DNA of 64,000 nt from Isurus oxyrinchus (lineage: Eukaryota), in NCBI GenBank assembly GCA_026770705.1, contig JANJGN010000009.1, forward strand, positions 164,238,001 through 164,302,000, in the 5' to 3' direction. The translations under genes and the position numbers were made by a program. Positions within the stretch are counted from its first letter, which is position 1. Each line of letters begins with the position of its first letter. The notes below the pieces were generated by a model. The model was not told where the DNA came from. It saw nothing but the letters and a program-made list of their open reading frames with translations, and did no database searches. Shown here piece after piece: positions 1,282 through 36,205 of this stretch.

Positions 1282-1399
1282 GACGTGAGTATTGTTGTGA
1301 AGCTTGTACAAGAGTATCACCAACTACATACTTGACAAGTACAGATATAATTTCCACTACCAATCGAGCCACAACTTCAGATCCCGAAAATGCTGAAAG
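1282..1399 (+). CDS. Stalk exon of upstream paralog (GREYCCEACTRVSPTTYLTSTDIISTTNRATTSDPENAE)
   Basis: Paralogous to 31421-31538; same 118-nt length, splice sites and phases; open frame. Confidence 0.82.
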
Positions 1400-2210
1400 G
1401 TACAATGTTCTCATGGATTGGCATTGCTTCCATATGTGAGAGATACAATTGGCCAAAGGAGTGAAAGTTGTTCATTAATTGTAAAGTAGCTCATCAGAAT
1501 GGAAATGGTGGCTGGGTTTATATCATGCTGTTGTGTTAGCTTCTTAATGAGGCTGCATTTTTCTGTTGGAAAATACAAGCAAGGAGTGAGCTTTTCCATT
1601 GTGTTGCCGCTCAGATGGTGTTTTTTGCCTTATTCACCTTGATTACTTCACCGCTAAGGTAATCTCACAGTGTGTGAGGAGTTGTACTTGTCAAACTTAC
1701 CTTGCTGCTGTCTACACTGACAGAGTACTTGTATTTGGGCTGATGAAAAGGAAGAATTAGCGTGATATATCTGCACATCCCTTGGTTTCACTAATGAGAG
1801 ACATCTTGCAACTCTGGTCCCATTTCCATATTATTAGCCTAAGCTGTTGACAATAAGTAGCAGAAATTGTAGTCCGATGTAAACACTCAGGAATCAGGTC
1901 TTTGAAGTTACAATGGTGATAAAGAGAAAATGCCAACTAAATGTCAAACAGAAAGAGGGACAGTTGGAAATGGACAGCAGGTATGTCCGCAGCTGTGGAG
2001 AAAATAAACACGTTCATGGTTTGGGTGCAGACACTTCTTCAGAATTCTAGTCCACACACGAAGCGAAGCAGGTCCACTCACCCCACAGATCCCAACTGAG
2101 CTGCTGAATGTTTCCAGAATCTTCTGTTTTCCATTCATATTTCTAGCACATGCAGTGCTCTTACTTTTATCCAGATTATTGTCAATGATTTAAAAAGGAT
2201 TGAAAGTCTA

Positions 2211-2500
2211 TGGTCTGAATTTTCCGCTCGGCGGGGGTGGGGGTGGGGTAGAGCGGGAGCGAGCACGGGCAGCTGTGGACCCCATCGCCATCCACCATCG
2301 GGTTTTTGACGCCATTTTGCGCGGGCGGCCAATTTAGGCCATCCCAGCGTATTTCCCGGCTCCCGAGGATAGCGGCAGTGGGCGAGAAGCGGGGAGTGTG
2401 CACAGACAACCGGGTCCAATGGTGACCCAGCGGCCTGTTTAAATGAAGGCCTGGCAGCCTGTTCCAGCTGCTCACAATGGCCAGTGCAAAGAATTTTCAC
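2211..2500. mobile_element. Harbinger-type MITE fragment at the duplication breakpoint
   Basis: Starts with GGTCTGAATTTTCC, matching the GGGCxGAATTTT TIR seen in other copies; GC-rich interior. Confidence 0.55.
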
Positions 2501-2743
2501 TTACAATTTAGCTTAATATTACAGTTAGACATTATGGACATGCTAAAGAAATTTGCTTCGTTTGATTTTTATCTAATGATCATGAAGTTGATAAGTAAAA
2601 CTTTAGCTGATTCTTTCAGCTAAAGTCCCTTGTCTACTTTATGTTGCTGCAAAAAATTACAGTGTAAAGCAGAGAGTCATGTTTCAAAAATGAAACAGTC
2701 TCATTTCATTTAAATGGTTTGATATTTCTTCTCTTTTGCTCAG

Positions 2744-2834
2744 TTACATTATCTGGGATGTGATACGCTGGGTGCTCTTTACTCTCCTGGTGATTTGTGC
2801 TGTTTCAGGCACATGGTGTACGAGAAAATCTAAG
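2744..2834 (+). CDS. TM exon of upstream paralog, activating type (SYIIWDVIRWVLFTLLVICAVSGTWCTRKSK)
   Basis: Acceptor cttttgctcag, phase 2 matches the stalk exon; donor AAG|gtgaga; hydrophobic helix with Asp/Arg near its N-terminus. Confidence 0.82.
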
Positions 2835-2879
2835 GTGAGAGTTATGGACTGTATAAGAATCATTATGGGCAGTTTGCAA

Positions 2880-3804
2880 TGTTATGATGTGGCAGATGAT
2901 GTGTGTCAGGCAGACCAAATCCACGAGTGAAACTTGGTCGAGCTGTCACAACGGTTTTGCAATTTATATTTATTATGAGATGCATGCACTGAATTCAGAC
3001 ACCATAAGTCTACCAAACTTTTAGAGATTTAAAAAATATATCGTTAAATATATTTATTAGCAAAAGATAGATTTCAATTACATACATAAGTCTACTAATT
3101 TCTTCTATAATAACTCGTAAAATTCCTAATTAGCCTCACTCCCAGTTACACCTCCTTTAAGGCAACTGTACAAAGAATAGATATTAGGTTTCAAGCAGAT
3201 CCAGCAAATTGACACAATGATCTGGACAGTGGAATTCCAAATGGCTTTCACCAGCTTCAGTTTCGTTAGACAGCAGGCTTATGCACAAATGCTGGAGGCT
3301 TCATTAAGGCTACTTCAAACACATCTGTTAGGTCTCATATGGACTTCTCCTGACACATAGCCTCATTCTCCTTTATATATGTTTCCCTCTATTTAACATG
3401 TAAACCCTATTGTTTCAGATACCTTTGAAACTGTGTCTTCCTCACAATGTAAAAACTTTCATGTCGATACTATATATTGTCAGTAACCTTTGAGATAAAG
3501 AAACACATTCCTTCATCTTGCTTAGCTGCCTAATTGTAAAGAGACTAAAATACTTTTGAAATCCAAATCTCCCTTCATTTATCTAAAAAGGCAAATTCCC
3601 TTTACACTTTACTTGCTAAACCAGTATCCATGTTTACTCATTAGCATGTCAAATACCTAGCTTCTTTTGTTGAGTTATATCATGCCATCTACCTGATCCC
3701 AAATGTAATTAAATCTCACACAGACAGACCCAAACACTTACCCCCATAAACCGACTCCACAATAAAGCAGAAAATATTATGAAAATTATTATACTTTCAT
3801 GACA
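2880..3804. mobile_element. Solo LTR (family also at 6989 and 62740)
   Basis: TGTTATGA...TCATGACA termini; imperfect flanks GCAA/GTAA; homologous to 6989-10647 and 62740-63355. Confidence 0.7.
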
Positions 3805-3914
3805 GTAAATTCTCCATCAATTATTTCAAAAACATTGATCACAGATATTGTCAAGAAAAACTTGCATTGATGTTAAGGTCCACAGATTGAAACAAGGTGT
3901 TTTACAGATTCTAT

Positions 3915-4860
3915 GGGCAGAATCATCTGAGATTTGCACAAAGTGCCGTAGTGAGTGGGAAAAAGGACATCCCGGGTGCGAAAAAACAGCACAGACCAAG
4001 ACCCTGATTTCCCAGTTTTTACTGGTGTTCCATGTTAAAGTATATGAGCCCCACTCAGGCCCGTATTCTTATTTCCCATTTTTTACTGTTTTTCCCTTCT
4101 GGGATATTATCCGCCGGCTGCAATGGCAGATTTTCACACCTTATTATCCTATTCCTGGCACGTCCCACCTCATTAATTATGCGTTCACTGGAAACACACC
4201 GGGTCGCTGGTGGGAAGGCCTCTGACGCGCCACCCCACCGTCACCTCAGGCCTTCATTTATCCAGACGCCCTATTTAAAGGCCGTTTCTGCAGAGAGATG
4301 GCTCTCTCTCTAGGCATCAGAAACTGCTAGGAATTCATAGCTGCCAAAGGGAGGAAACATGTTGCATCCAAAATTTAGCACTGCCTCCCTCAGCCTACTG
4401 GGCACTGTGAGAGCTGCCGTGAAGTCCTCTACCCCAATTCTAGGCGAAGACCAACAAGCATGGCAACAAATCTAGCATGGGAGATGGTGGCAGCAGTGGT
4501 CAGTGCCAATGCACTGCTAAAGAGGACAGCCACCCAGCGCTGAAAGAGGATGAATGGTCACCTTCTTTCTGCTAGGTTAAATCACTTTTCTCATCACTCA
4601 CAACTCAAAAACCCATCACACATTCACTGGGATCTCACTCAATACCAGTTCAAAGGACATCACCATTCTCCCTCTCACACACACCTTCCTCTGCCCTGCC
4701 GTTCCTGTCCTCATCCATGGCACCACTTACCACCCACACGTGCCGGGTGCCCTTCTCATGTGACCTGGCAGGCACCCTGCTTACGCTCTCTCCATCTGTA
4801 TTCCTGCAGAACAAGCTGGATGATGTCAGGGATCTGACACTTACTGAGAATATAGGAGTC
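3915..4860 (+). mobile_element. Truncated Harbinger element with decayed Myb/SANT exon
   Basis: GGGCAGAAT terminus; 4340-4575 homologous to the minus-strand Myb exon at 10058-10302. Confidence 0.65.
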
Positions 4861-4899
4861 ACGGACACTCCCTTGGAATCGCACGCAGACCCGTGGAAG

Positions 4900-6090
4900 C
4901 TCTTGCTGTTTGTTTAAATATTTCTTGCCATTCCATCTCATAATCATCTTTCTCCCTCTTTATTCGTTTTTTGGTCATCCGCTGCTGGTTCCTAAAAAGT
5001 TCCTAATCCTCAAGCATACCATTAGTTTTCCCCCCTTTTTATACTTTAGTTGTTGATTGGATACTCTCCTTGACTGCCGTCGTTAACCATGGGTGGTTCA
5101 TCCTTCTCATCAAGTCCTTCCTTTTGAGCGGGATAAATTTTTTCTGAGCGTTATGAAATATTTACTTAAATGTCTGCCACTGCTCACCCACTGACCTTCC
5201 TGTTAGTCTATTCTCCCAGCCAACTCTTCCTTCATAACTCTGTAATTGGCCTTATTTAGGTTGAGGACACTGGTTTTAGAGACGAGCTGCTCACCCTCAA
5301 ACAGAATTTCAAATTCTACAATGTTGTGTGATCGCTATCCCCTAGAGGATCCCTAACTACACGATCTCTTATGAATCCTACCTCATTACGCATTGCTAGA
5401 TGCAAAATAGCCTGTTCCCAAGTAGGTTATGCAACATATTGCTGAAAGAAACTATCCTTGGTACACTCTACAAATTTGTCTTCCAAGTTAGCCCTGCCTA
5501 TCTGATTTCTCCAGTCAATATGCAGATTAAAATAATCCATGACAATTGTAGAACCCTTCTTACATGCCTACATTATTTCCCAATTTATGCTTTGTCCTAC
5601 AGTGAGCAAACTCTTTGGAGGCCCATAGATGAGTCCAACGCATGGCTCGTTCCCCTTACTAATTGTTATTTCTACCCAAACTGATTCCACATCACGATCT
5701 CTGCCAGCTATATCACCACCGCACTGATACCTTCATTTATTAACAAAGCTACCCCACCTCCTTTTCCTTTTTGCCATTTTTTTCGGATTGTCGAATACCC
5801 TTGAATATTGAATTCCCAGTCTTGGTCACCCTGCAACCATGTCTCTGTCATGGCTATCAAGTCATATCCATATATTTCTATTTGTGCCGTCAACTCATCT
5901 GCGTGCATTCAGATAACAAGCCTTAAGCTTGGATTGTTTACCATTATTGCCCATTCTGGTTCTCATTTCTGCTGCACTCTTCTGCTCCTTGTTCTGCCCC
6001 TTCTCATCATACTTTGATTACCATTCGGCTCTTCACTACCCAGCACCTCTGCTCTCTCATTTCCTTTAGATGTTTTAAACTTCCCTTCAA
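4900..6090 (-). mobile_element. CR1-clade LINE fragment (APE endonuclease region)
   Basis: ORF 5708-5908 YDLIAMTETWL...GGGVALLI. Confidence 0.85.
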
Positions 6091-6613
6091 TTGTCCCTGT
6101 TACTATGATCCCATGTAACCCATCCATAATAGAAACATTCCATAGTTTAATCTAATCTTACAAAATAATCGATACAAGAAAAGGAAGCGAGGAAATGAAG
6201 GCAGAATCTAACAGAGCACCAGAGATGATTGTTTGTCAACAAGAACACAAGGAGACGTAAAATTATACAGACTGCAACAGGAGACTGAGATACAGACCCA
6301 AGAGAATTGTTACTGGAAGCAGCAATTGCACTGTATAAAATATATTTAATAAAGTAGCCACAGCAATCAATTTCTACCCATAACGCCAGTTGCAGGGGAA
6401 CATTAGTTACCCATGAGAAAATGGTGTTACATCTCTTCAAGAGGGGCACAACTGATAACTTTTCCCAGCACATATGCAATGGGTGAGGAGTGTGATGTTG
6501 CCACAGCTCCAGTTCATCACATGCTTTGCCTCGATTTGCTGGCATAGCCAGAATTCTGTTCACATGTAAAATAATGCATCGTTCTCAGTCTCAATTAATC
6601 TGGTGATTTTCAG

Positions 6614-6655
6614 TTCCAGACACTCAACGGATCAGATCCTCAGAGCTTGACCTAA
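6614..6655 (+). CDS. Candidate short terminal exon of upstream paralog (FQTLNGSDPQSLT*)
   Basis: Acceptor gattttcag, phase 0 fits the TM exon donor, AATAAA about 110 nt downstream; tentative, alternative acceptor at 10798. Confidence 0.3.
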   Translation, partial: FQTLNGSDPQSLT

Positions 6656-7774
6656 GAGGGAAAATGAAGATTCCGGGGTTACATCTACATTGATGGAATT
6701 TTTCATCCTGACAAAATATTCATTATTCGTCGAGCTTTGAATTTCTTTTAATAATTCTACAGAATAAAAATCGATTTTCTCATCAAATAATTTTGACCAT
6801 TAAATTAGTGGAGCAATCAAAAAGCAAAATGATGGCTGCGAACTTCAATTTGTATATCTACATCCTGACAATAATTTCTCTGTTTGCTGCCTTAGTGTCT
6901 ACACAATTTATTTCTTGTTTTAAGACTATCAAATTCTTTAAGAAATAAGCAACTTGAAAGGTTCATTTATTGGAAACCAATCGCTTCATATTATGATGCA
7001 GCTGAGCTAAATGCTGAGCGGTTCAAATCCAGGAGGGAAACTTGAACCAACTGTCATAACTAACTGTTGCAATTTGTATGATTGAAGATGCAGGCTTTAA
7101 ATTCAGTAGTAATAAGACGACTGAGTCTCAACAGGTTTTTATAAAACTAAATTAAACATTTATTAATACAAGAAAGATTGTGAGCACATGCATATGTTGA
7201 CAAAATTACTACTATAATGTCTACAAAAATCCCCTAATTAATCTGGCTCCAAGTTATACCTCCGTTAAGGCATCAGTAAAACACATGGATTTAAACAGAC
7301 CCTGGGCAAAGCTCACTCTGGACGGTCACATTCAAATTGAGTTTCTTTCAGCTCTGGCTCTTTGCAGACAGCGGCTTGAGGCTTACGGACTGGAGGCTTT
7401 AGTTCTTAGAATCGATCTCCTTTTTACCAACAGCCTTCTAATCCTTTTTACATATTTTTCTCTTTGAATGCAATTTTCATTCTACCACTATTTCTTTTGA
7501 AATTTTAACTCTTCAAATAATAAGACACTTTCATACGACCCACTTTATTAGTAATCCTTGGGAAAAATAAACAAACACACAGTTTCTGAGCTTCACCTGG
7601 TTAGGTGTAATATTTCACACCATCTCTGAACCCAAGGTAGGGGAGTTAGTTTAAAGAAAAAATGCAAATTGCCCCCATATTTACCTAATTAACATTTCAA
7701 ACCTATCCTTTTCTATACATCAAAGCCTCTAGACAAGCTGGCTTTAATCCAATTAGGACACACACACACACAGA

Positions 7775-10578: not shown

Positions 10579-11267
10579 ACAGGTACAGACACCACTAAAC
10601 TCTCATTTAAAATAATTTCCAATAACATTATAAACATTAATATAACGCTTCACACTTCAATAATATGTTTTACATGGGATGGAACCTTTATAACAGTAGA
10701 ATGGGAGACCCACAGGTATAATAAAGAAGGTGTTTTCCTTTTTGAAACCTGATATGATCTTAATGTTATTATGTTATGACTTTTATCCATATTTTAGCAA
10801 ATACAATCTACACTTTTGAGGAATTTCCTGTTTCCTAATGACCACAAGCGCAGTTTCAAGCACGAAGCCTGATTCCCTGTTTGACCACCTCCTCTCTTGC
10901 CCCCTCCATTGCCTCTGTGCTGTCAGACTGCCTGTCCAGCTGTTTGTCCAACAGCCAGTCCCAGATTACAACTGAACATTGTGAAGACTGAAGCCACTGT
11001 CTTTGTCCCCACTACAAACACTTTTCCTTATAGCCACTGATTCTATCCACCTCCCTGTCCAATTGAGTTTTCATCCAATGTTGTTCTTACCTACAAATTC
11101 GACTGCTCCAATACCATCCTAGTTGACCTTACATCTTCCACCCTGAACCAACTTAAGCTCATCAAAACCTTTGCTGCCAGTTTTACGATGAGTAAGGCTC
11201 TATATCAATGCAAGTTATTGTTCTTGTGCTCCACACTTCCCGGTAGGAAGTAACATGTTGGACCAGA

Positions 11268-11708
11268 AAGTGCAGGAGGGGTTTAGAGGAATGGTTCCAA
11301 GAATAAGCAACTTCAGTTACGAAGATAAAGTGGAGAGATTGGGACTGTTCTCCTTGGGGAGGAGAAGGCTAAGAGGAGATTTAATCGAGGTGTTCAGAAT
11401 CATGAGGGGGCTGGATAGAGTAGAGAAGGAGAAACTGTTCCCACTCGTAAAAGGGTTGAGAACAAGAGGGCACAGATTTAATGAGATTTGCAACAGAAGC
11501 AACTGTGATGTGAGAAATGAACATTTCCACATGAGTAGCTCGAGTTTGGAAAGCGCTGCCTAGAGTGTGGTGGATGCAAGTTTAATTGAGGCTTTCAACG
11601 CTTTCTATTATTTGAATAGAAACAATGTGCAAGGATACAGGGAAAAATCAGGAGAATGGCACAAAGTCATATTGCTCATTTGGAGAGCCGGTGCACACAC
11701 GATCGGCC
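11268..11708 (+). mobile_element. CR1 LINE 3' fragment
   Basis: ORF 11255-11563 LGLFSLGRRRLRGDLIEVFRIM...RTRGH (CR1 ORF2 C-terminus). Confidence 0.9.
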
Positions 11709-11864
11709 AGGTGGTCTCTACTGGATTCTACTGGACTCATCAGAAATCCAGTAGGGATTCCAGTTGCTTCAGCTAAATTCAGCTGGAACCACAGCACCTG
11801 TTCCCAATTGGACTAGGAGTCAGAGAGGGACAATGCAAGAACTGGGGCATAAACTCTCATTCAG

Positions 11865-13286: not shown

Positions 13287-13928
13287 TATCTTCCATGTGC
13301 CATGTGTGTGTCTCCGAGTCAGCGCACCGGACCACACTGCTTCTGCCCGATTAGGGCGCTTCAGTGGAGTCCGACACCAGTCCAGTGCCACCCAGCTCCC
13401 ATTCCCGAGGACAGGTGATGGAACCTGCCCAGTGCCAGGATGAGCTGCTTGGTAAGATCGGGAGGTGGGAAGTAGAGAAGGCAGCCGACCAGGAAAAGCT
13501 GGAGGATATCTCCAGGATTACTGACTGTCTCCAAGAAGAAACTCTTGTAGCCTTCAGGCAGGGTATATATATGTTTATATAGCTGCAATTTACAGTTACC
13601 TGCCACATCCCTTTTAACACTTTCTAATGCAGCATCGCTCTGATCAGAATCAGATTTATTGGGGTTGTGCAAATGTCTCCCCAGACTCTGATATAACAAT
13701 AAAAAGCTGCTTTTTCCTTTCCAGTTGCAGTAAGAGGAATGTCCCAGCCTCTCAATGTGACAGGGCAGCCCAGGACTATGTCTCTCAGTGCAACACCCAG
13801 GAACACACACAGTGCAGCCCCCACATTGATTGTTCCAGTTGTGGGGGGAAAGCCTGCATGTGGAGTAAGTGTACAATTGGGAAGATATTGATTCTCACAA
13901 CATCTCCACGGCTTTAAATCAAATTGAG

Positions 13929-14035
13929 TTCTGTTGAAGGGTCATGAGGACTCGAAACTTCAACTTTGCTCTTCTCCGCCGATGCTGACAGACCTGCTGA
14001 GTTTTTCCACTTATTTCTGTTTTTGTTTTATTCTG
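13929..14035 (+). mobile_element. Penelope-type terminal fragment with hammerhead-like motif
   Basis: ctgttgaagggtcatgaggactcgaaac...gatgctgacagacctgctgagtttttcc shared with five other copies. Confidence 0.65.
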
Positions 14036-14210
14036 AATGTTTTGTCTGGAGTCAATTACAAGCAGCGTAGACAATGTCTGTGTTTTAATTGTGTCTGGCT
14101 GTCCTCGTTTTTCACAAGAAAATTTGCCAGGCTTTTACTCAACTTTTATTCTGAGTGTTTTTTCTGAGTTTATGGAGATATAACCTCATATTCTGCTGAA
14201 ATGCACTTTA

Positions 14211-14373
14211 NNNNNNNNNNNNNNNNNNNNNNNNNNNNNNNNNNNNNNNNNNNNNNNNNNNNNNNNNNNNNNNNNNNNNNNNNNNNNNNNNNNNNNNNNN
14301 NNNNNNNNNNNNNNNNNNNNNNNNNNNNNNNNNNNNNNNNNNNNNNNNNNNNNNNNNNNNNNNNNNNNNNNNN
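14211..14373. other. Assembly gap (163 N)
   Basis: Run of n. Confidence 1.
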
Positions 14374-15194: not shown

Positions 15195-15235
<41 letters not shown>

Positions 15236-15310
15236 GCACACACACACACACAAACATAAGCACACACACTAATATCCTCAATCACCCACACACATACACA
15301 CACACACAAA
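14374..15310. repeat. Compound minisatellite of about 60-65 bp (AATATCCTCAATCACCC + (CA)n + AAACMTAAGCACACACAGT)
   Basis: Direct reading; about 14 units with variable CA tracts. Confidence 0.95.
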
Positions 15311-20135: not shown

Positions 20136-20279
20136 GATTAGTAAATAAAACCAAAATATTAAGAAATCTCTGTATTCAATTTGACAACTAAATTTCAGAA
20201 ATGAAAAAAATACCTCTGTTCCTGTGGGGTTTGTGGAAATTGGGAGGGGGTTCCTGTTCTAAATCACTTCACAATTCAG

Positions 20280-20490: not shown

Positions 20491-20583
20491 TCCTTGTATC
20501 ATTTATATTAGACAATTATTTCAACGTGAGAAACAAGAGCTGAGTGTCTGGAAACAAGTTCTGTCCTGATCTTTGTGAACAAA

Positions 20584-20623
20584 ATGATGTGGATTTTGAT
20601 TCTCCTCATTAGTTCTCTGCCCG
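20584..20623 (+). CDS. Exon 1, signal peptide (MMWILILLISSLP)
   Basis: aaaATGATG start, hydrophobic stretch, donor G|gtgagt in phase 1; continues VSGALW in exon 2. Confidence 0.85.
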
Positions 20624-23600
20624 GTGAGTGACAGCCAGAGCTGGATGTTCCGATATTCTGAGTTGGTTTAACTCTCGTGCGCTGGTTATACAGGAGATGT
20701 TTAAATATTTGGAGACATGCAAAGGCACAAGAGAGGTCTTGGGCACAGTGGGTAGTGTCTCTGTATCTGAGCCAAAAGCTCTGTGTTTGAGTCCCACTTC
20801 TGTTCTTGTTGAGAATGGAAGGCGCGTTCTAACCAGGACCAACAGATTGATTATCAACCTGAAAATCTTCCAACAGACCGAAGGCTGGTGGTAAGAGGGT
20901 TTAAGATCCCAGTCCAACATGTTTGATGTGGAGTGGTGCCGCTCATTCTGTTGTCTCCGGAGGTTAGTGACCTGTTCCAGGGAAAACAAGCTTTGGAAAG
21001 CAAAAGTAAACATGTGCTTTGTCTGCCGCATCCGTCTCTAGATGTGGGAAGTCTCCTAAGTCTAAAGGCACAAAATAGTCAGCAAAACCAAATGAGTAAT
21101 AATTGTGAAGTATTTTATTACCCTGTGAATTAACTATCACACCATGGGAATAGTTAACAAATAAACTGAACTGCATTATTAATTATGAATGATAAGTAAA
21201 GGAGAATTAAATTTTCAGAATGCTATGCAAGCAACATTTTGAAAATGAAAACCTTTTTTAATTGGTAATTTTCAATATAATCTGATGTCCAGTATAGACT
21301 GAAGACTGCAGCGGTAATAATCCCACAAATAAAACATGTCCCAAGTTGGCGAATATTTCTGTTTTTTAAAGTACAGTTGATGAAATATTGTGTTATGAGG
21401 CTCTCTCAGTGACACTGTTCCTCACTGGTAGATGGTTGGTCTACATCACTCTTCTCATAAGTAGCCTTTTCTTGTTCATTCTTTAACTTTAAGAAACTAG
21501 ATTTTGCTCATCACTCAGTATTGCCACCTCTCCATCATTTCGATGAATCTATTTTATAACACACAATGTTAAACTCCCAGCCCCATCTGCTCTTAACCAC
21601 CTCCCCAAAATAGTTTGTGCCTCTAGCTGATCAATTTAATGCAGAATACTCGATGTACTTATGGACAGGAAACTGAATCATGTTTCTGTCTGTTTGGCAA
21701 TCTTCTTCTTTTCAATCCTTCCTCTTTCTGATCTGATCTCTTTCCCATTCCCTTTTCATCTGTAACTTTTCCTGTATCTTTTTCCTTTTCTTCACTTCTC
21801 TCTAGCCATTTAATTATTTTCAATCTCTCTTTTGTTATTTTAGTGCAAACTCTTTCCCCACAGCATGAGTTTCTCTCCCAGCAAGGCCATTGGTCTCATG
21901 AAAGTTCACGTCAAGGCATCCAAATCCCTACCTCAGGAATCCATCCATACTGTAAGGCCACCTATCACACAACCTCGCAAACCTTCAAGACCTTCAAATC
22001 CTACCTTTGGACATCCCTAACTCATTCAAGATCTGAACAACCCCTCCTGCAAGGACACAAACCTACCCCGCACCCCACCCATCTCAGATCAGAGCAGGGA
22101 ACTGTCGGATCCTGTGACCCCCTCCACACTGCTCCCCAGCCGACTGCAAATCAGGCCTGTCAATCAGGCTGGTTTCTGGCTGTGGAACCTCCTGATGATG
22201 TCAAACGCAGTCTAGGGTGAAACCCCAAAATATGAGGCAGAACCCCAATTTCCAGGTTCCCTCACTCTACCAGCCCCTGCCAATATGTCAAGAAAATGTC
22301 CCAATTATCTCACGAGTATATCATTGTCTGAGACGTGCTTTGGAACCACAGTGAGGCTCTGATAAGTGTCTATATGAATGATTACTCTCATCACAAACTT
22401 GATGGAATTTAACTCATTAAAATGCATCTGTTTGAATTAAGCAGTTATTTCCAGTTCAATTCCTGAAATGTTGTCTCCTCAGTTTCAGGTGCATTGTGGG
22501 CAAAAGAGAGAGTAACAGGAGTTGTGGGAAGAGCGATCACAATAGAATGTCACTATGATGCGTGGTACAAGTCACATATAAAATATTGGTGTCGCGGCTG
22601 GACTCGCCAGTGTAATGTTGTAGCATCAACAAATAGGCCAAATGGAAGAATATCGGTCACAGATAACAAGTCACAAGGAATATTTATTGTTACTATGAAG
22701 GATCTTCACTCAGGAGATACAGGATGGTACAGCTGTGGTATTGAAGCAACTGGCCACGATCCAATGTTTAATGTAAAGCTACAAATATCTTACGGTACAT
22801 TTCTTACTGTTTTTCTTTATTACTCTCGACTGAAATGTCTGCTCAATGTTTTATCTGGGAGGAAACATGACAGCTCCGATATCCCGAGGCTCCACAGCAA
22901 TGCAGAGTCTTAAAGGTAAAGGGCAGAGGTCGGGAAATCCGACTCATGTTACCCAAACCCAATTCATGGCCTGTCAAACATGTCAGAATTGAACGTTACA
23001 AGTGAACTAAACGGAAATTGAGAAGTTGTTTTGATGGTAAAAGAAGCCTCTTTATTAATTGTTGAGACATTGGGCTGGATATTCAGCCTCAAAGCTGGTA
23101 GGGGCAATTCAGAAAATTCCCCGCTCGGCCTTGGAAGAAAGTGCCCACAAAGGTGGGATTCCCATTGCTGGGAGCTGTGCCCGGGCTGCAGTCTGGCCAG
23201 CCACACCAGGAAGAAATGCAGAGGCAGCCACAGGGGCTGCCGGCTGCGGAGACGGGCTGTTTAAAAGGCCCCTCCTTAATGCCCTTGGACTTTGTAACAG
23301 CTAAACTCAAAACACAAAGGCCCTTCACCCCTCACCCCTCACAGCCCCCAAAGCGGGTGGATGTGAGGGGAAAATTTGTCATGAGGGGGCTTGGAGGTGG
23401 GTGGAAGTGTACAGCTTGAAGTCAGGAGCATGAGGGGGTATAAGGCGTGGGTATAGGGATAGAGGGGGAACGAAGGGCCAAGCGGGTTGGATGGGGGTGT
23501 GACTTGACATAGCGGGCATGAGATGCACCTTTTGAACTTAGCTGTTAAAAGATCCCCTCATGCAGACCAGTGTTTACAGCTCCTCTGAGGGGCTTTGGAC

Positions 23601-26600: not shown

Positions 26601-29600
26601 AAATCAATCTTTACTTTAATTCTTAGACTTGTAAAAACAAACTTACCCTATCTTTATGTCACTTCATGACACCTTTTTACAACCTGCATATATCCCCCTT
26701 TGAACTAAAACAACTCAATTCAAACTATTCCTGTTATTGCTTCATGTACAAATCTGTTGAAGTTCTTTTTTGTTTATTAACATATCAAAACCACATCTTA
26801 TTGTTGACTTTTGACCCTATCCACTGATGAGGCAGTCCACGTCATGGAACCATAACCTTAAATCTGGAGATAGGCTCGTCAGGGATGTCAGGAAGCACTT
26901 CTTCACGCAAAGTATAGTGGAAATCAGGAACACTCTCCTCAAAAAAGCTCTTTAGTTCAATTGAAAATTTCAAAACTGAATGACAGATTTTATCTGGTAG
27001 CAATATTCGGGTTATGGGACCCAGGTAGGTAAATGGACAGAAGATACTGGTCAGTTGGGATTTAATTGAATTGTGGAACAGGCTGAAGGGGCTGCATGTC
27101 CGAATCCCTTTTCCATGTTCTGGAGCCCCAGTTAATTTTTCAGTGGTCTGGGCCTTGTGAGTAACAATGTGCTGTGAAACAAGCTCACAAACAGTTAGCA
27201 TTTCAAAGAGACACTTTCCAATCACCAGGCAAACTGTGACCTGTGTTGTTTCAGAGGACAGTTTGTGACAGTGAAAGCAGTGAAGGCCTGCCAAACCTCA
27301 TTAAAAATGTTGGTGAAAGTGTCACTTTTCTCTGGCTAATCCCTTGACCAAAGATGGAATTTTAATTCCCCTCCCCCATCCTGCATCGGGTTGAGGCATG
27401 ATGGGATTTGCTGGATCCAGAACCTTCTCCAGCACGGCTTGTGATTCAGGAGACACACGAAAGCTTCACCCCCACCCCCAGGCAAATGTTTTATACAATT
27501 TCTCCCTCCCCATGATTGGCCAATCCTGCCCCAAGCAGCAAAGTCACCCTGACTCCCTCCTTGCTGCTGTGCTCCGAGGACACATTCCCACCAATTTCCA
27601 AACTTTTACCGTAACTTTCCTACTTGGAAACCAGCCAAACTTTCAATCAGTGTGCAAGAATTCTGGTGAGATTTTGCTGTTAAATTCGGTACAAACTCAA
27701 CATTCCTGGTATTTCCAGCTTTCTCACCACCCCACACACAGTCCCCCCTCTCGTCTCCACGTACCAGGGTTGAAGTGTTCTATCGCAGCATGCAGAGAAC
27801 CAGAGCCAATCACATTTACATTCTTATCCAAAGCTACAAAACATGTAACCGATATCTGACAACATTTTGCCCTCATTTTACCCTTTGCTTTTCTAAGATT
27901 CTCTCCAAATAATTCACATTTAACTCACAAACAATGAAACAGCATTGGAGGCTCACTACCAGCTACGAAGAGATATTGTTCACCATGATATTCATGTTAA
28001 CATACTCTCAGTATCAGAGCTGCTGTTCTGATCTGGAGACCTGATTTGTTCTGATATAATGGCTGAAAGGGTAACTCAGGCCTCTAAGAGGATGGAGAGA
28101 TATGGGGATGGATTTTTAAAAAGTATGGGGTCAGGATTAGAGATGGGTGGGTATGAAATTTGACACCGCTGGTCTCCATGCCAATTTACCATTACAATCT
28201 CAAGCCCGAAACATTTAGAAAGCGGGTGGCTTGCAGTCAAGTGGTGGGCAGCTAACTTAGGAAATAACATTTACCAAAGGGGCCAATTAAAGACCCATTC
28301 CTGCACCCACTGGGATTCCATTCAGCAATGCAAGCAGACCACATTGCCCCTTCAGGATCATGGCCCGGCAGCTGCCGGGTTTTGAAACATAAAATAAACT
28401 TACCTGGACTTTCCCCTTGCTGTCTCCATGCTCAGGTCAGCAACTCCCACCTCACCTGGTGAGGCCCTCTAGCATCAGGAGCCCGCCCTCTGTCCCTGAT
28501 TGGATGGTGAGCCCAGTTCCAGTCTTTTGATTGGCTAGAACATTGAAAATTGCAGTGGGCATGCCTAAAGAATGGTGAATGGTGTCAGGACCTGAAACTA
28601 TCTCCCATGTCCAGTTCCCAAACCCAAATTTAACATCCACCCCATAGAGTGGTAGATGTGTTGGTGAGATTCCAACATGGCAGAGCCTGGCTGAGATGAA
28701 GTGCAAAGTTTGAAGAGTATTTGATTATTAAATGTTCAGTATCTGAATGTTTCTTTCTTTCCAACAGAACCCGTGTCTGTTCCTGTGCTTAGATTTTCAT
28801 CACCGCTAAATGTCTCATGTTCTGGGAGTTCAGTGTCCGTCTCCTGTGAGTCTGTCCAGGGATCCCTTCCCATTCCGTACACATGGTATGAAAAGACCCT
28901 GTCTGAAGATTCAAAGATCTCTGACACCAATAAACTGGATCTACATTGTCAATCCTTCAAACAGCAACATCATCAATATTACTGCACAGCCTCAAATAAT
29001 CAGGGAGTAAAATCCAGTGATACTGTCACTGTTAACTTAACACTCATGAATGTAACAACGAAAAGCTGCAGTTATGTGATACAAATTGGAAACATTGGTA
29101 AGTGTTACTTTCTACAAACAATGTGGCGAATGAATGTTTTAAATTCATGTCTATCCAAACTGGTCACTGGTTCAGTTCCTTCAGTTTATCTGAGAAATTG
29201 CAACTGGCCAAATTCACTCTCTCTGGTTCCTCAAACATTCTGAACAAGGTCACTAAGTTGCATTTTTCATGAAAAATGGACAGGATCAGAAAATATCCCC
29301 AAAACATGCAAAAATATTGCCGAATCTCCAATAAACCCATCGAATCAAAATAGCATTTGATTGACAGAGCTTTCATAAAGCAATTTGTCTATTTCCAGCA
29401 GATGGAATTGTGAAATGCAACCTCCAACTGTTGTGTCCTAGTTTGGGAAGGATATCACTGATAGAATAGAGAAGAATTGAATTAAAATGAACCCTTGGAC
29501 GAGAGGTTTTAGTCATGAGGAAAGTATCATCACAACTGAGGTGAATGACCAGCTGGAGGACGTGGAAATTGTTAGAAATTTGGATAAGGTAACTCTAACT

Positions 29601-32600
29601 ATTTCCACTAGTCAGTGAGTCAGCAACAAGAGAGCATTAACTTTAAAATTATCACTAAAAGGACAAAGGGAGAAATTTGGAGAATTTTATTGATGCAAAC
29701 TGTTTTTAGGACATGAAATACCCAACTGAAATAAGTTTACAAACAAATTTAATAATAGATTTTAAAAGGGAAACAAATGTATGAGGGTGTGGGAAAAGGA
29801 CAATGAAATGGAATTAAATGAGGAGATCATTCAGAGAACCAGCATTCGAGTGATGGGCTGAATTCCCTCCCCTGTGTTGTAAAAATTCCATCACTCCAGA
29901 CAAAATCTCAACTTATCCTGTCTAAAAAATTAACTATTCCCTCCCCATAAAACAGTGACCCTGGTTCTGAAACAAGGATGACTTTAGCCTATTTGAATGT
30001 AACGGTTCAATTTTCTGCCGAGTGGGTGCAGCATGTTCACCGAGAAACACCAACATGGGCACAAAACAAAGAGAATCACATTTTCACCTGAGCAGCAGGA
30101 GACAGGAATTTACATATGCAAATATATTGACTCTGGTCATGTGGTCTCTTGCCTCAGTTGTCAGGGAAGAAGGGTGGAATTTTACACCCCCATTGCGCCA
30201 GGGACTGGGCTGTAAAATGCAGCCAGCCATTCTAAACTCCATGCACTCCAGCAGACCATAAAATCCCACTGTCACAAGCCTCAGACCAAAGGCTGTCAGC
30301 AGCAGGTAGAAATTACACCTGTAAACTGTGTTTGTACTGGAGTTGTCAGCAGGGACTCAGTTGCACTCTGACATTTGATGCCAGTCTTTTGTAGTTACAA
30401 GTTCCCCTTAAGAGTTAAAATTCGGGCTGATACCATGATCCAGCACTGAGGTAGTGCTATACTGGTGGTGGTGCTGCTACGTAGATGAGGTATTAAACTG
30501 AGGATCCACATCCCCCTTAGGTAGATGTAAACAATTCCAGGGTATTATTCACAGAATAGGAAAGTTCTCCTGGTGTCCTTGAAGCCTTTATTCCTCAACC
30601 AATACACACAAATAGGGAGCAGGAGCAGGCCATTTGGTCTTTTGAGCCTGTTAATGTCACTAGAAAACAGATCATCTAGTGAATGTTTTACTGATGTTTG
30701 TGGGGCTTTGCTGTGTACGAATTAACTTCCACGTTTCTTGATATTAAAACTGTGGCTTTACTTCAAAAAAGTACTTCATAGGCTCTGAAGCACTTTGGGA
30801 TATCCCAAGGTTGTGAAAGGTGATGAATCAACACACATTGTTTCTTACTTTTTGAAACAAACGATTTATTAAAATACATCTGAACCAATTATCTGAGTGC
30901 AAACGGCAGGGGGGAGGGGAGGGAGGAGCCAGTCCCAGCAGCAAGGTGGTCATTATAATTAAATGGTCAGAAAATCACTGGCAGGTTTGAGACATTCATG
31001 GTCTGTTGGTGAAGATTCTCATCTTTACTGCAAGCTCAGAAAACTGCCCCCAAAGGGCAGAAAGTGACCATTGCCAGTATTAGGATGTGACTGTTTAATG
31101 TGTTCACATGAAATTCATGTCAAGAAAGTGTATCTCTGGATTGTAGTCCACCAACCTGAGCCCTTAACTGGCCCACTTCTAACTCTGTCCCACCAACTCT
31201 CAGATATAGTAAAGAAAGTGGAATTACCAGTAAAGATAGATCACCACCAAGTATCTGCGACCTCTCCACTTGTGACCAGAGAGGGGTAAATTACACAGAA
31301 ATCAATTCTACCAGCCAGGCTTTTCCTCAATTAATGAGGTTCCATTTGACAATGATGCTCTCTCAGTTGACTACAAGTGAAAATGAGCTGAATCTGAGTG
31401 TTATTCTTTTGCTTCAACAGGACCTGAGTATTTTTGTAACATTTCTACAACAGTATCAACAACTACACATTTGACAAGTACAGATATAATTTCCACTACC
31501 ATTCGAACCACACCTTCAGATCCCGAAAATGCTGAAAGGTACAATGTTCTCATGGACTGGCACTGCTTCCATATGTGAGAGATACGACTGGCCAAAGGAG
31601 TGAAAGTTGTTCATTAATTGTAAAGTAGCTCATCAGAATGGAAATGGTGGCTGGGTTTATATCATGCTGTTGTGTTAGCTTTTTAATGAGGGTGCATTTT
31701 TCTGTTGGAAAATACAAGCAAGGAGTGAGCTTTTCCATTGTGTTGCCGCTCAGATGGTGTTTTTTGCCTTATTCACCTTGATTACTTCACCCCTAAGGTA
31801 ATCTCACAGTGTGTGAGGAGTTGTACTTGTCAAACTTACCTTGCTGCTGTCTACACTGACAGAGTACTTGTATTTGGGCTGATGAAAAGGAAGAATTAGC
31901 ATGATATATCTGCACATCCTTTGGTTTCACTAATGAGAGACATCTTGCAGCTCTGGTCCCGTTTCCATATTATAAACCTAAGCTGTTGACAATAAGTAGC
32001 AGAAATTGTAGTCCGATGTAAACACTCAGGAATCGGGTCTTTGAAGTTACAATGGTGATAATGAGAAAACGCCAGCTAAATGTCAAACAGAAAGAGGGAC
32101 AGTTGGAAATGGACAGCAGGTATGTCCGCAGCTGTGGAGAAAATAAACACGTTCATGGTTTGGGTGCAGACACTTCTTCAGAATTCTAGTCCACACACGA
32201 AATGAAACAGGTCCACTCACCCCACAGATCCCAACTGAGCTGCTGAATGTTTCCAGAATCTTCTGTTTTCCATTCATATTTCTAACACATACAGTGCTCT
32301 TACTTTTATCCAGATTATTGTCAATGATTTAAGAAGTATAGAAAGTATCTGATTTTTATTTTAAGACAAATCTCTATGTCTGCTCTGTTGTATAAAGTTG
32401 ACAACAAAGATCATTTGAATATGAAATCCATATATGTATGAAACAGTTATTACTTCCACTTTTTTCAGGGAACATCAGGTATTCTTGCATTTGGATTTTA
32501 ATAATTAAAACTGACCCAGTATTAAACAGGGCTCAGTGGTAACACACTCACCTTACATGTCAAAGGCTGTGGGTTCACTTCCGCTCCAGAGACCTCAGCA

Positions 32601-35600
32601 CATTATCTTGGCTGACACTCCAGTGCACTACTGAGGGAGTGCTGTGCTGTTAGAGGTGCCACCTCTCAGATGTGATACACCCAAGGCCCATCTGCTCTCT
32701 CAGGTGGGTGTATCAGATCCCATAGTGACATTCATAGGAGATCAGGGCAGTTCTTCCTCGAGACCTGGGCAACATCACTAAACAAAACAAATTATTTGTT
32801 CATCCAACTAATTGCTATTTGTGGGAGCATGCTGTGTGCAAATTGAATGCCACATTTGCCAAATTACCACAGTTACACTGCATTAAAAATATTCATTGCT
32901 TGTAAAGTGCTTTGGGATGTCCTGAGGTCGTGAAAGCCACTTTATAAATATCTACCTTTAAATATTTCTTTAAACAAATGGCCAATAATCAATTGTGAAC
33001 CAACACTGTCCCTTGTCTATTCTCTGTTTCACAGTCTGATTTACATTGTGCTCGGAGTGCTGGGGGGCATTCTTGTGGTGTTTGCTGTTTCTCTACTTCT
33101 GTACCTGAGGCAAATCAACAAGGGTGAGTTTTTATTTCTCTTTAATCATTTTATTACATGGCAATAATTTGCTGCAGAAGGATAGAATATACAGTTTGTT
33201 GGATCAATCAACAATCACCCATGACCCTAGTATTCTCATTCTGGTCTACACATATTGAACATGGGGCTGAATTTTTCTTTATTCGAGCGGGTGCACACCA
33301 GACCCAAACAAGAATAAAATAGTGCGCGATGAGGTCAGACGAGCGTCTGGACATTATCGTACACTCTGGCGATATTTCTCTCTGCAGGCACGTGCGAGAG
33401 GCGGCAGCACGCCCGCTGACAATGAAGCAACCTATTAAGGCCCTTAATCAATTAATAGAATTGAATTTTTTGCTGCCGGTCCAACTGTTCAGTTGGTTTG
33501 TGGTCGAATCGGCCAATCAGCCTTTGCACTTTTGGCGAAACCTCATCAATGGGCGGGATGGGGTTTTGACCAGTGATTAAAGCAAAAACTTTGAGAACTC
33601 GTATTTAAATGGCCATGGTCATGTGACAAAGTCACATGAGGGGACATGTTTTCATTAGTTTTCAATTCTTTATTTCAATTGTTCAAAATCTTCAGCTCCC
33701 TGAGGCAGCTCTGAGACTCAGGGAGCTTTCACTGTGAGCACGTGCACACATGCACAAACTTGCACGCTTGCCCTCCTCCTGCCCTCACGCCAGCAGTGCT
33801 GAGCGTTGCAGCACGTATTATGCACTGACTGGCCATTAATTGTCCAGCCCGTGTGAAATCGATGTTGGGGCCTGATCGGGGGCAGTGGTCGGCTTCACAA
33901 CCACTCCTGAGCCCACCTGCCATGCCCGCCCGACAAGGGCAAAATTCTGCCCATGGAATAATTAAGTTGAGTATTGCTGATAAAAAATACATTTGAACAG
34001 ATGAACAAGGAGCAGGAGTAGGCCATTCAGCCCCTCGAGCCTGCTCCGTTATTCAATAATGTCATGACTGATCTGATGGTAACCTGAAATCTGCATCCCA
34101 GCTACCCCCCACATAACCTATCACCCCCTTGTTTACCAAGAATCTATTCACCTTCCCCTTAAAAATATTCAAAGACTCTGCTTCCCCCACCTTTTCAGGA
34201 AGAGAGTTCCAAAGACTCATGACCCTAGGCGTGAAAAAATTTTGCCTCATCTCCATTTTAAATGGGGCGACCCCTTATTTTTAAATAATTACCCCTAGCT
34301 CTAGATTCTTCCACAAGAGGAAACATTCTCTCCACATCCAGCCCATCAAGACCCCTCAGGATTTTATTCTGTTGAAGCAATCAGCACTCTCTTCTCATGC
34401 ACTATAAATTGTTGCTCCCTTTATTGTTGGTATTGTTGCAAACTGTCCTGATGAGAACAAGGCAAAAAGCTTTGACAGCGCGTCTCTTTGAATGAGAAAA
34501 ATTGGGCCTCTGATTTCTCCCTGTGATGAATTGCTTGACCTTCCATCAATGACACAACATAACAGGTACTTGTATTCAGGATAGAATTGATCAGTTTTTG
34601 AAATGCTCAATCCTAAACACACGGGAGTTAATTTTCTCTTTCACATCACGGGTGTTAATCTGTCAGAGTGCTAAATAGAAATTAATGGAATGAAATTTGG
34701 GTGTGTTCTCTAATAGACAATCTGTTCTGTCAGACAGTAAACGTCATATGCTGGTAGTGTAGTTGCTGGTTTCTGGTGTGTGTGGCCTATATTACCGAGA
34801 GAAACTAGTGTTACTCTGTTACTTGCTTTAAACTGCTTTATTAACACTGTATTTAAGATAGGTTACAGAGTAGGTATGCCTCCCCTGAGTAGAGTGTTCC
34901 ATCCTCTCTCCCAGGTAAATAGCACATGACTGCCAATTTCATTGATACATCATGGTGTACATCACTCATCAGCATAGCTATTCTATTAACCCATTACACT
35001 ACAAACCCTTTTGTCATGCTATGTATAATTACCAGGCTGATTGTTCAATCCATGTTGGAAATCATTGGTGCAATGCAGATGAACACATTTCCATGAATGT
35101 GGATCAATGTCAGGTTTAGTTACTTGCAACTCATGTTTAGTTTAGAGATTTTAAACATATTAACCATTCCTTGTTACAGTTCTTTCAACAGTTACATTGT
35201 AATTTTTCAGGTCCAAGCTGCATTCCAAGTCAGTGGAGAGACAAGACTCTCCATGATAATCAGGTAAGGATATAAACATTACTTCTCTGAATACTGTTTG
35301 GAAATTTGCAAGCTGGTGGATATAGAATTTACTAAGAACTTACAGCCATTCGGCCCATCTGCACGAGGCTGGTTTTTATGCTCCACACGAACCTCCTCTC
35401 ACCCCTCTTCATCCCACCCTATCAGCATATCCTTCTGTCCTTTACTCTCTCATGTGCTTATCTAGCTTTCCTTTAAATGCAGAAATCCTATTGGACTCAA
35501 CTCCTCCCCAGGGAAGGAATAAGGAATTCAGAAGCAACTTCTTTACCCAGAGAGTGTCAGAATCTGAAATTCGTTACTTTAAGTTAAAGTTCAGGCAAAT

Positions 35601-36205
35601 ACCATAAATAAAGCTGGATAAAGCTGGATAAGCAGTTGAGGGAGAAGGTAATAGAAAGATATTTTGAAGAGGTTGGATGAAGAGGGGTGGGAGGAGGCTT
35701 GTGAGGAGAATGATACTGGTATAGACCCATTGGGCTGAATTGTTTGTTTCTGTGCTGTAAATAATTTTTAATATCTTGTAATCCTTTATAAACTGATTTA
35801 TAATAATGGATATATAGCTTTCTCCTCATAACAGCACAAGTCACTATTCAGGCTAATCAAAAATAAATGCAATCATTTTTTTAATATATTTAGGTATTGG
35901 CAGCAGAGGAAGTGAGCACTCTGTATGCAAATGTAAACCACACTCAAAGGAGCTCGGCAGGAACACACAGAGAGGGAACTGCCGAGTTGAATAATGAGGA
36001 AATCACGTATGCAGCAGTGCAGTTGCAAAAGAAATCGTCTACACAGAGAGGTGAAGGGACAAGTCACTCAGTTAACAACCCGGACAGTGTCATCTACAGT
36101 GGAGTCATGATTCACAACCAGCCCACAAAGAAAAACCCTAAAACTCTATTACATGATACTCCCCAGGAATCTGAAATGGCAATTTATGCTACCGTTACTC
36201 ATTAG
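20584..36205 (+). CDS. Complete inhibitory-type CD300/pIgR-like Ig receptor (MDIR-like), 7 coding exons: 20584-20623, 22483-22794, 28768-29097, 31421-31538, 33035-33123, 35211-35263, 35894-36205; 417 aa
   Basis: All six introns are GT..AG with matching phases (1,1,1,2,1,0). Exon lengths sum to 1254 nt with one open frame ending in TAG. Architecture is SP-V-C2-stalk-TM-ITIM tail. Confidence 0.9.
22483..22794 (+). CDS. Exon 2, Ig V domain of CD300/pIgR/TREM type
   Basis: GRAITIECHY...KYWCRGWTRQC...FIVTMKDLHSGDTGWYSC: canonical V-set Cys/Trp plus the family's extra C-x6-C pair; acceptor ctcctcag, donor G|gtacat. Confidence 0.95.
23680..25212 (-). mobile_element. Harbinger internal fragment (Myb gene exons 2-3) in intron 2
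   Basis: Homologous to 8430-9770; ORF 24509-24805 MSQLLELERPTREHQEG matches ORF 9010-9273. Confidence 0.85.
25323..25770 (+). mobile_element. Harbinger terminal fragment with start of decayed Myb exon
   Basis: gatttgcactaagtgcg subterminal motif as at 3930 and 10545; APRFSELSL peptide. Confidence 0.6.
28768..29097 (+). CDS. Exon 3, Ig C2 domain (FcR-like/PECAM-like)
   Basis: PVSVPVL...VSVSCESVQGSLPIPYTWY...YYCTASN; acceptor ttccaacag, donor G|gtaagt. Confidence 0.92.
30140..32346 (+). repeat. Segmental duplication / conversion tract, copy 2
   Basis: Direct repeat of 1-2207; homology ends after ...gtcaatgatttaa. Confidence 0.97.
31421..31538 (+). CDS. Exon 4, Thr/Ser-rich stalk (GPEYFCNISTTVSTTTHLTSTDIISTTIRTTPSDPENAE)
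   Basis: Acceptor ttcaacag, donor AG|gtacaa; phase 1 in and phase 2 out join exons 3 and 5 in frame. Confidence 0.85.
32525..32960 (+). mobile_element. Deu-domain SINE
   Basis: tRNA-like head (ctcagtggt...gggttc) followed by ccagtgcactactgagggagtgctg core. Confidence 0.7.
33035..33123 (+). CDS. Exon 5, uncharged transmembrane segment (LIYIVLGVLGGILVVFAVSLLLYL-RQINK)
   Basis: Acceptor tttcacag, donor G|gtgagt; 24 hydrophobic residues followed by basic residues. Confidence 0.9.
33264..33952. mobile_element. Harbinger-type MITE, complete
   Basis: TIRs GGGCTGAATTTT / AAAATTCTGCCC; 3-bp TSD ATG on both sides. Confidence 0.8.
33995..34395 (-). mobile_element. CR1 3' fragment
   Basis: ORF 34062-34256 RQNFFTPRVMSLWNSLP. 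Confidence 0.85.
35211..35263 (+). CDS. Exon 6, juxtamembrane cytoplasmic segment (GPSCIPSQWRDKTLHDNQ)
   Basis: Acceptor tttttcag, donor CAG|gtaagg; converts phase 1 to phase 0 as required by the last exon. Confidence 0.8.
35894..36205 (+). CDS. Exon 7, cytoplasmic tail with TLYANV, ITYAAV, VIYSGV and AIYATV motifs
   Basis: Acceptor atatttag, phase 0, ORF 35897-36205; ITSM/ITIM consensus matches. Confidence 0.9.
   Translation, partial: VLAAEEVSTLYANVNHTQRSSAGTHREGTAELNNEEITYAAVQLQKKSSTQRGEGTSHSVNNPDSVIYSGVMIHNQPTKKNPKTLLHDTPQESEMAIYATVTH

Follow-up and report, generated by a model that had tools for sequence, protein, structure and literature searches.

Layout of the locus

The 64,000-nt stretch of Isurus oxyrinchus DNA analysed here (contig JANJGN010000009.1, positions 164,238,001 to 164,302,000; the whole stretch is called the window, and coordinates are counted from its first letter) contains two adjacent genes on the same strand. 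Judged by their sequences, both are new members of the known modular domain immune-type receptor (MDIR) family rather than a novel type of system. Gene B is a complete gene of the inhibitory type, with an uncharged transmembrane (TM) segment and a tail carrying tyrosine motifs, while the 3′ part of gene A, at the left edge of the window, encodes an Arg-bearing TM segment of the activating type. Opposite signalling modules are present on adjacent genes of the same strand, and we consider it highly probable that the two constitute an adjacent MDIR pair, B complete and inhibitory-type and A activating-type, which was recently duplicated or re-homogenised.

A BLASTN comparison of the window with itself revealed one long direct repeat, in which 1–2223 corresponds to 30141–32362 with 95.9% identity over 2226 columns. 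An earlier note on this DNA had described two same-strand genes sharing a stalk exon and its flanking introns, which is precisely what this block contains. The two stalk exons inside it are 118 nt each, with AG/GT borders, and are entered in phase 1 and left in phase 2. Copy 1 begins at window base 1, and the block may extend leftward beyond it. At the other end, the A/B alignment fades where a GC-rich repeat starts in copy 1 and does not resume further on, so that the end of the homology, about 810 nt 3′ of the stalk exon, could be placed within some ten bases (2212–2223). The GC-rich element is evidently a repeat, since the depth of the DNA runs at 2400–2599 was 30–100 times that of the neighbouring bins. 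It had no detectable inverted termini and no second copy within the window, which leaves its earlier designation as a Harbinger miniature inverted-repeat transposable element unconfirmed. The TM exons of A and B and their flanks could not be aligned (best local score of 20, versus 17.2 ± 2.6 for shuffled sequences), in agreement with the earlier view that these exons are unrelated.

The 30,139-nt spacing is an estimate since an assembly gap lies between the two genes, and the 13.8 kb separating the poly(A) signal of gene A from the leader of gene B include this gap of estimated length. No further exons of the MDIR family were found in window positions 36206–64000. The features of the locus are collected in Table 1.

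Table 1. Features of genes A and B and of the intervening DNA in window coordinates. X1 is a sequencing run described below; identifiers beginning with P denote annotated homologous proteins.
Feature	Position	Strand	Evidence and remarks
Duplicated block, copy 1, gene A (intron, stalk exon, intron)	1..2223	+	BLASTN
Gene A stalk exon, (G)REYCCEACTRVSPTTYLTSTDIISTTNRATTSDPENAE, three Cys	1282..1399	+	Phase 1 to 2; covered by the spliced X1 contig, 2 mismatches
GC-rich repeat element at the end of A/B homology	2210..2500	.	Alignment decay and read depth
Gene A TM exon, (S)YIIWDVIRWVLFTLLVICAVSGTWCTRKSK, Arg-bearing, activating-type	2744..2834	+	Phase 2 to 0, 91 nt; joined to the stalk in an X1 contig
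Gene A terminal exon	6620..~6780	+	Stop codon 6653–6655; alternative acceptor 6614; AATAAA 6763
Assembly gap in intergenic repeat-rich DNA	14211..14373	.	Run of N; no exon abuts
Gene B leader exon, MMWILILLISSLP	20584..20623	+	Phase 0 to 1, donor GTGAGT; matches N-termini of P0014, P0182 and P0004
Gene B V exon, pIgR/CD300-type V-set, four Cys	22483..22794	+	Pfam, PDB, skate MDIR2
Gene B C2 exon, FCRL-like	28768..29097	+	PDB, Pfam, skate MDIR5
Duplicated block, copy 2, gene B	30141..32362	+	BLASTN
Gene B stalk exon, (G)PEYFCNISTTVSTTTHLTSTDIISTTIRTTPSDPENAE, one Cys	31421..31538	+	Shared block
Gene B TM exon, (S)LIYIVLGVLGGILVVFAVSLLLYLRQINK, uncharged within the helix	33035..33123	+	Matches white shark P0014 at 27 of 29 residues
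Gene B cytoplasmic exon 1, (G)PSCIPSQWRDKTLHDNQ	35211..35263	+	Phase 1 to 0, AG/GT; resembles NKSLNDNEQ of P0014
Gene B last coding exon (cytoplasmic 2), four Tyr motifs, to the stop codon	35894..36205	+	Homologue tails

Gene B, a complete gene of the inhibitory type

Gene B (20584–36205) is intact, with seven exons and 417 codons in an open frame, AG/GT borders and consistent phases throughout. The exons encode, in order, a leader, a pIgR/CD300-type V domain, an FCRL-type C2 domain, a Ser/Thr-rich stalk, an uncharged TM segment and a tail of 121 residues with four tyrosine motifs. The latter comprise TLYANV, which resembles an immunoreceptor tyrosine-based switch motif (ITSM), ITYAAV and VIYSGV, which are canonical immunoreceptor tyrosine-based inhibitory motifs (ITIM), and the ITIM-like AIYATV. 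The uncharged TM segment leading to four such motifs had been proposed from the letters and was recovered here. The acceptor formerly given for the V exon was replaced by a better one at 22483, 6 nt upstream of the obvious site, which yields the sequence VSGALWAK as in all homologues, and the leader exon was placed at 20584–20623.

The V exon was recognized by Pfam as a V-set domain (1.1e-10). In the PDB it matched all five domains of pIgR, best of all D5 (3e-42, summed over the domains), as well as CLM-1/CD300F (2.5e-18), CMRF35-H, NKp44, TLT-1 and TREM2. The C2 exon matched FCRL5 in the PDB (2.9e-47, summed over repeated domains) and also FCRL4, and in Pfam it matched Ig_C17orf99, Ig_3 and Ig_2, with Ig_C17orf99 alone above the cutoff. 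All exons of gene B have counterparts in annotated shark proteins, and its tail is 52–60% identical to those of P0181, P0177 and P0025 (Heterodontus, Scyliorhinus and Heptranchias models).

Gene A, the 3′ part of an activating-type gene

Three exons of gene A lie in the window, all of them open and with intact splice sites. The TM exon contains WDVIRW and thereby the D-x-x-R motif that had been read there before; the Arg occupies position 8 of the exon peptide, ahead of some 18 hydrophobic residues. This peptide is identical to that of Scyliorhinus canicula P0036 at 26 of 30 residues, to that of a Heptranchias model at 22 and to that of skate MDIR5 at 17.

The terminal exon was not found when homologue tails were sought in 2835–20583 by tblastn, two regular expressions and Smith–Waterman alignment of AG-preceded short open reading frames (ORFs), because the patterns required E/D/N/Q or H at sites occupied by G and P in gene A. 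It was located through the C-terminus of the white shark protein P0182 (named "Fc receptor-like protein 6", 275 aa), which ends in SDPENPE-RHSRNQILRA straight after the stalk. The window has RHSTDQILRA and a stop codon at 6620–6652 behind the acceptor ttttcagttccag; this frame agrees with P0182 at 8 of the 10 C-terminal residues and stops at the same place. In phase 0, as it would be entered from the TM exon, the terminal exon encodes TLNGSDPQSLT and a stop codon, which adds 11 residues and completes a tail of 17 residues, CTRKSKTLNGSDPQSLT, without tyrosine, so that no ITIM-bearing tail follows position 2834, as the earlier note had expected. The TLNGSDP frame fits the xLN/DxxD and SDP tails of homologues, which read KSK-TLDEADGH, KSK-ALNEADGH and KTK-LLNESDHH in sharks and end in ESDPPRVV and QSDPHRLV in rays. 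Use of the acceptor at 6614, 6 nt upstream of 6620, would add FQ, and these tandem acceptors parallel the two-residue insert that distinguishes isoforms X1 and X2 of Stegostoma.

Four sequencing runs (X1, X6, X7 and X8) were mapped on window positions 1200–7199 only. Run X1 comes from the same organism as the window, and its evidence consists of contigs, which are silent on expression level or tissue. X1 depth was zero over introns at 1400–1999 and 2200–2599. A 484-nt X1 contig aligned with its letters 275–391 on 1281–1397 and, contiguously, with letters 392–484 on 2742–2834. Since AG ends both the exon and the intron, the joint appears offset by two letters, and the contig therefore carries exactly the GT-AG junction from 1399 to 2744 that had been predicted. 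The first 274 letters of this contig do not match the intron adjoining the stalk acceptor and thus stem from at least one more upstream exon (for comparison, the C2 exon of gene B has 330 nt), which bears out the expectation of further exons upstream of the gene A stalk. The contig is clearly A-like, as gene B differs at 14 stalk positions. Another X1 contig covered 6636–6780 without mismatches and stopped 12 nt beyond the last base of AATAAA, as expected of a 3′ end. We conclude that the gene pair is real and at least partly transcribed.

Runs X6 to X8 were rejected as expression evidence; they cover the introns at 90–95% identity and represent DNA of related species. Because they cover 1200–7199 including the introns, close relatives of the window's species share the locus. 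At 1329–1331, these runs, which derive from two other organisms, have CAT (His) as in gene B; gene A has TAC (Tyr).

Skipping of the 91-nt TM exon would shift the frame, so that the terminal exon would be read as R-HSTDQILRA, and would give a secreted form such as that annotated for white shark P0182. Gene A could then mainly be a secreted decoy, whose usual transcript skips the TM exon, ends with ENAERHSTDQILRA and a stop codon, and, instead of signalling, competes with gene B for the same ligand. The sole close annotated relative, P0182, is a TM-less form, both frames of the terminal exon are open and have stop codons separated by 3 nt, and secreted forms have been cloned in the FcR-like family of Xenopus (PMC2413239). 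However, the single junction observed joins the stalk to the TM exon, whose strong conservation in catshark and Heptranchias argues for its use as a membrane anchor, and secreted and membrane forms can coexist. We judge a predominantly secreted gene A to be quite unlikely.

Assignment to the MDIR family

A HMMER scan of 1.84 billion representative sequences with the C2 exon gave 616 matches. About 35 of the 150 best listed matches were closer than 50% identity, and those looked up were elasmobranch proteins. With the activating-type catshark protein P0036 (304 aa) as the query, 76 relatives were obtained from 20-odd shark and ray species. Their names include automatic ones such as "pIgR-like", "Fc receptor-like 5" and "CMRF35-like molecule 8", as well as those of two entries of the clearnose skate (Rostroraja eglanteria), "Modular domain immune-type receptor" 5 and 2, which P0036 matched with E values of 5e-139 and 1e-71, respectively. 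A second protein search with the C2 exon returned only four partial relatives and no protein of the window's species; the best match overall was at 82.6% identity.

The two skate proteins resemble the window genes exon by exon. The V exon of gene B is 61% identical to MDIR2 and 55% to MDIR5, and the corresponding values for the C2 exon are 59% and 64%. The TM segment of gene B is 56% identical to that of MDIR2, and the TM segment of gene A is 57% identical to the Arg-bearing one of MDIR5. MDIR2 consists of V, C2, an uncharged TM segment and a multi-Tyr tail; MDIR5 has the order V-C2-V-C2, followed by a TM segment with WKVGRW and a short tail. Among the homologues, the number of V-C2 units ranges from one to six. 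Skate MDIR1–5, with activating and inhibitory forms, were reportedly described by Cannon et al. in 2006 (Immunogenetics 58:362, cited in PMC3031540).

A census of the fetched shark and ray proteins gave 28 Arg-TM short-tail forms and 31 uncharged-TM multi-Tyr forms. The former class was defined by the pattern [WY]-x-[VMLI]-x-R-[WL] with a short tail lacking a Tyr motif, so that the Arg is present in all 28 by selection, and the latter by an uncharged TM segment with two to five [SIVLT]xYxx[ILV] motifs. The residue three positions before the Arg varies among the 28 (D, S, N, K or T), and NVGR or NMGR occurs only in some ray forms.

The V domain of gene B is of the CD300/pIgR/TREM type, contains a second pair of Cys residues and is followed by C2; homology to the skate proteins was found, and a charged-TM short-tail form (gene A) and an ITIM-tail form (gene B) are both present. 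Since these are all the defining features of MDIR that could be tested, both genes were filed as members of that family, and the MDIR-like identity put forward in the earlier note stands. Orthology with CD300 was considered unlikely on account of the extra FCRL-like C2 domain. An identity as pIgR was rejected, as there are one V and one C2 domain instead of two to five V domains and no transcytosis tail of the pIgR type. MDIRs have been described as multigene families with activating and inhibitory members in skate and zebrafish, with features of CD300, TREM, FCAR and pIgR (PMC3031540).

The ectodomain of gene A is predicted to resemble the V-C2 ectodomain of gene B. Indirect support for this comes from white shark P0182, the protein with the highest overall match, which combines a complete V-C2 gene with a terminal exon of the A type and whose V and C2 domains are about 82% identical to those of gene B.

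Origin of the pair and divergence of the stalk

Both types of TM segment occur in sharks and rays, and they are therefore ancient, older than the shark–ray split. In contrast, the introns flanking the stalk differ at only 71 of 2108 columns (3.4%, i.e., 96.6% identity), which indicates that the pair has recently arisen or been re-homogenised. A recent tandem duplication or an unequal exchange that ended at the repeat element at about 2212 would account for this arrangement.

The stalk exon itself departs from its surroundings, with 14 substitutions in 118 nt versus 71 in 2108 nt of intron (Fisher P = 1e-4). The proportion of nonsynonymous differences (pN) is 0.151, while that of synonymous differences (pS) is 0.036 and the intron rate is 0.034. 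The two stalk peptides are identical at 27 of 38 residues, and most of the 11 differences fall in the 5′ half. There are three stalk Cys residues (CC..C) in gene A and one in gene B. This divergence is due to diversifying selection or else to patchy conversion by a third copy.

An alignment of 49 membrane-proximal C2 domains was submitted to a quick IQ-TREE search, and the support values of the resulting tree are to be read cautiously. In this tree, the signalling type switches no fewer than 13 times, with 6 or more of the switches forced by starred branches. Activating and inhibitory sisters occur within species, for example Heptranchias P0157/P0025 (support 100), and the C2 domain of gene B clusters with inhibitory-type receptors from basking shark, white shark and Mustelus. 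The switches together with the within-species sisters indicate that ectodomains have repeatedly been exchanged or homogenised between the two classes, of which the pair in the window is a fresh instance.

The same comparisons bear on whether A and B belong together functionally. They might be members of a large, fast-turnover tandem array that chanced to be joined in a recent unequal crossover and that recognise no ligand in common, for which the 11 of 38 differing stalk residues could be quoted. Nevertheless, the introns around the stalk differ by just 3.4%, and within-species activating/inhibitory sisters with near-identical C2 domains recur, as in the Heptranchias couple. An association without a shared function is accordingly held to be unlikely, and a recently duplicated or re-homogenised pair of opposite signalling type is preferred.

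We also offer a speculative extension, which is possible but rather doubtful at present: new pairs may recurrently be made by swapping TM and tail exons at repeat breakpoints 3′ of the stalk, whereupon the membrane-distal half of the stalk is selected apart. The two extra Cys residues of gene A would then alter the disulphide pairing and prevent mixed A/B dimers. If true, the swap and the stalk divergence would provide a testable mechanism for the birth and mutual insulation of paired receptors.

Predicted signalling and points against the pair

Once phosphorylated, the ITIM and ITSM motifs of gene B would be expected to recruit SH2 phosphatases. As the tail of gene A is without tyrosine, its signalling would need an adaptor with an ITAM (immunoreceptor tyrosine-based activation motif); the Arg, located near the outer membrane face, would pair with an Asp of such an adaptor. 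TM segments with an N-terminal NxxR bind FcR-gamma, as found experimentally for Xenopus XFL, and such binding is known for LILRA2, FcalphaR, GPVI, NKp46 and OSCAR (PMC2413239, PMC4536121). By analogy, the Arg-bearing TM segment of gene A may couple to FcR-gamma.

Several points weigh against this reading of the locus. The functional roles proposed for genes A and B are predictions from motifs. In gene A the motif is DxxR (DVIR), with Asp in place of the Asn of NxxR, and a survey from 2014 did not find FcR-gamma in sharks (PMC4016189). The leader, V and C2 exons of gene A would lie to the left of the window. The spliced X1 contig has 3 mismatches to the window over 210 nt, one of which is synonymous (TAC to TAT at 1331), and could represent an allele or a paralogue of at least 98.6% identity. 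Two low-depth X1 contigs (2808–2910 and 2881–2999, both with 0 mismatches) read through the donor at 2834; they would represent unspliced precursor or a minor form that adds a 31-residue tail without motifs. The junction from 2834 to 6620 was not among the X1 joints listed.

From such observations it might be argued that gene A is a 3′ relic, in which the stalk region was copied onto an old remnant of TM and terminal exons without working upstream immunoglobulin exons, and that the spliced RNA came from a near-identical paralogue. The window does start inside the duplicated block, and the mismatches of the spliced contig would fit, but the three exons of gene A are open with intact splice sites, and the X1 contigs on 2808–2910, 2881–2999 and 6636–6780 match the locus without a single mismatch. 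Moreover, the spliced contig has 274 nt upstream of the stalk acceptor, and in P0182 an A-type terminal exon belongs to a complete V-C2 gene. A relic is therefore considered very unlikely, and an activating-type gene A next to an inhibitory-type gene B remains the interpretation adopted here.

Surroundings of the genes

The assembly gap lies 7.4 kb 3′ of the poly(A) signal of gene A and 6.2 kb 5′ of the first exon of gene B. It may hide sequence, but since no exon of either model touches it, the reading frames are unaffected. To its left is a transposon terminus (13921–14030) that occurs four times within the window, and to its right follows a CA-rich satellite with a 66-nt unit (14374–15312), which is probably the reason for the assembly break. 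A 27-nt minisatellite at 12099–12993 (GAGGAGGCTGAGGTGGAGGCAGTGACT, about 33 copies) gives rise to ORFs of 420–480 aa on both strands (11861–13303), which were rejected as genes and regarded as minisatellite artefacts. Reverse-transcriptase-like ORF fragments, debris of long interspersed nuclear elements and of the Penelope type, occur between and after the two genes at 16293–19106, 49923–57189 and 60832–61963.

Significance

The locus provides a cleanly resolved genomic example of MDIR in a shark, with the exons of gene B complete, the 3′ end of gene A supported by RNA and the breakpoint placed. It does not add a new category, as RefSeq already lists the homologues under automatic names, and the MDIR family with its activating/inhibitory duality is said to have been described in 2006. 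What emerges more widely is that pIgR/CD300-type V domains, FCRL-type C2 domains and Arg-bearing short-tail receptors are conserved across sharks and rays. According to the 2014 survey, sharks are without homologues of pIgR, FcRL and FcR-gamma, and bony fish are the first group to have such receptors (PMC4016189). Since the V and C2 exons strongly match pIgR and FCRL5, this claim no longer holds at the domain level. Its FcR-gamma part matters for the mechanism, and a practical question raised by the locus is which ITAM adaptor serves the receptors of cartilaginous fish.

Comparison with known systems

The V exon matches all five domains of pIgR, and many RefSeq homologues are called "pIgR-like"; pIgR is thus a relative at the level of the domain and not an orthologue. 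The mammalian CD300/CMRF35 family has the same type of V domain with an extra Cys pair and combines ITIM and charged-TM forms in one cluster, where CD300A and CD300F are inhibitory and CD300B, CD300C, CD300D and CD300E activating. However, the ectodomain of CD300 proteins consists of one V domain without a C2 domain of the FCRL kind, whereas gene B has an added C2 and so departs from the single-V plan. The charged TM residue of CD300 proteins is a Lys or Glu in the middle of the helix and not an N-terminal Arg.

Gene A instead agrees with the FcR-gamma-coupled NxxR receptors (LILRA, FcalphaR, GPVI, NKp46, OSCAR and XFL TM1) in that its Arg sits at the N-terminus of the TM helix. The XFL receptors of Xenopus are alike in having two classes, one with an N-terminal Arg in the TM segment and a short tail (TM1) and one with an uncharged TM segment and Tyr motifs (TM2), and also in their secreted forms and shuffled ectodomain modules (PMC2413239). 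They differ in their C2-only ectodomains, in NxxR, where gene A has DxxR, and in FcR-gamma binding established by experiment.

The closest likeness is to the MDIR family of the skate, which has the same architecture and matches in sequence, MDIR2 being like gene B and MDIR5, with its W-x-V-G-R-W TM segment and short tail, like gene A. In comparison with the skate genes, the genes described here come from a shark, i.e., from another species and order, their TM motif is DVIR where skate has KVGR, and the two forms stand in tandem with a stalk region that is 96% identical.

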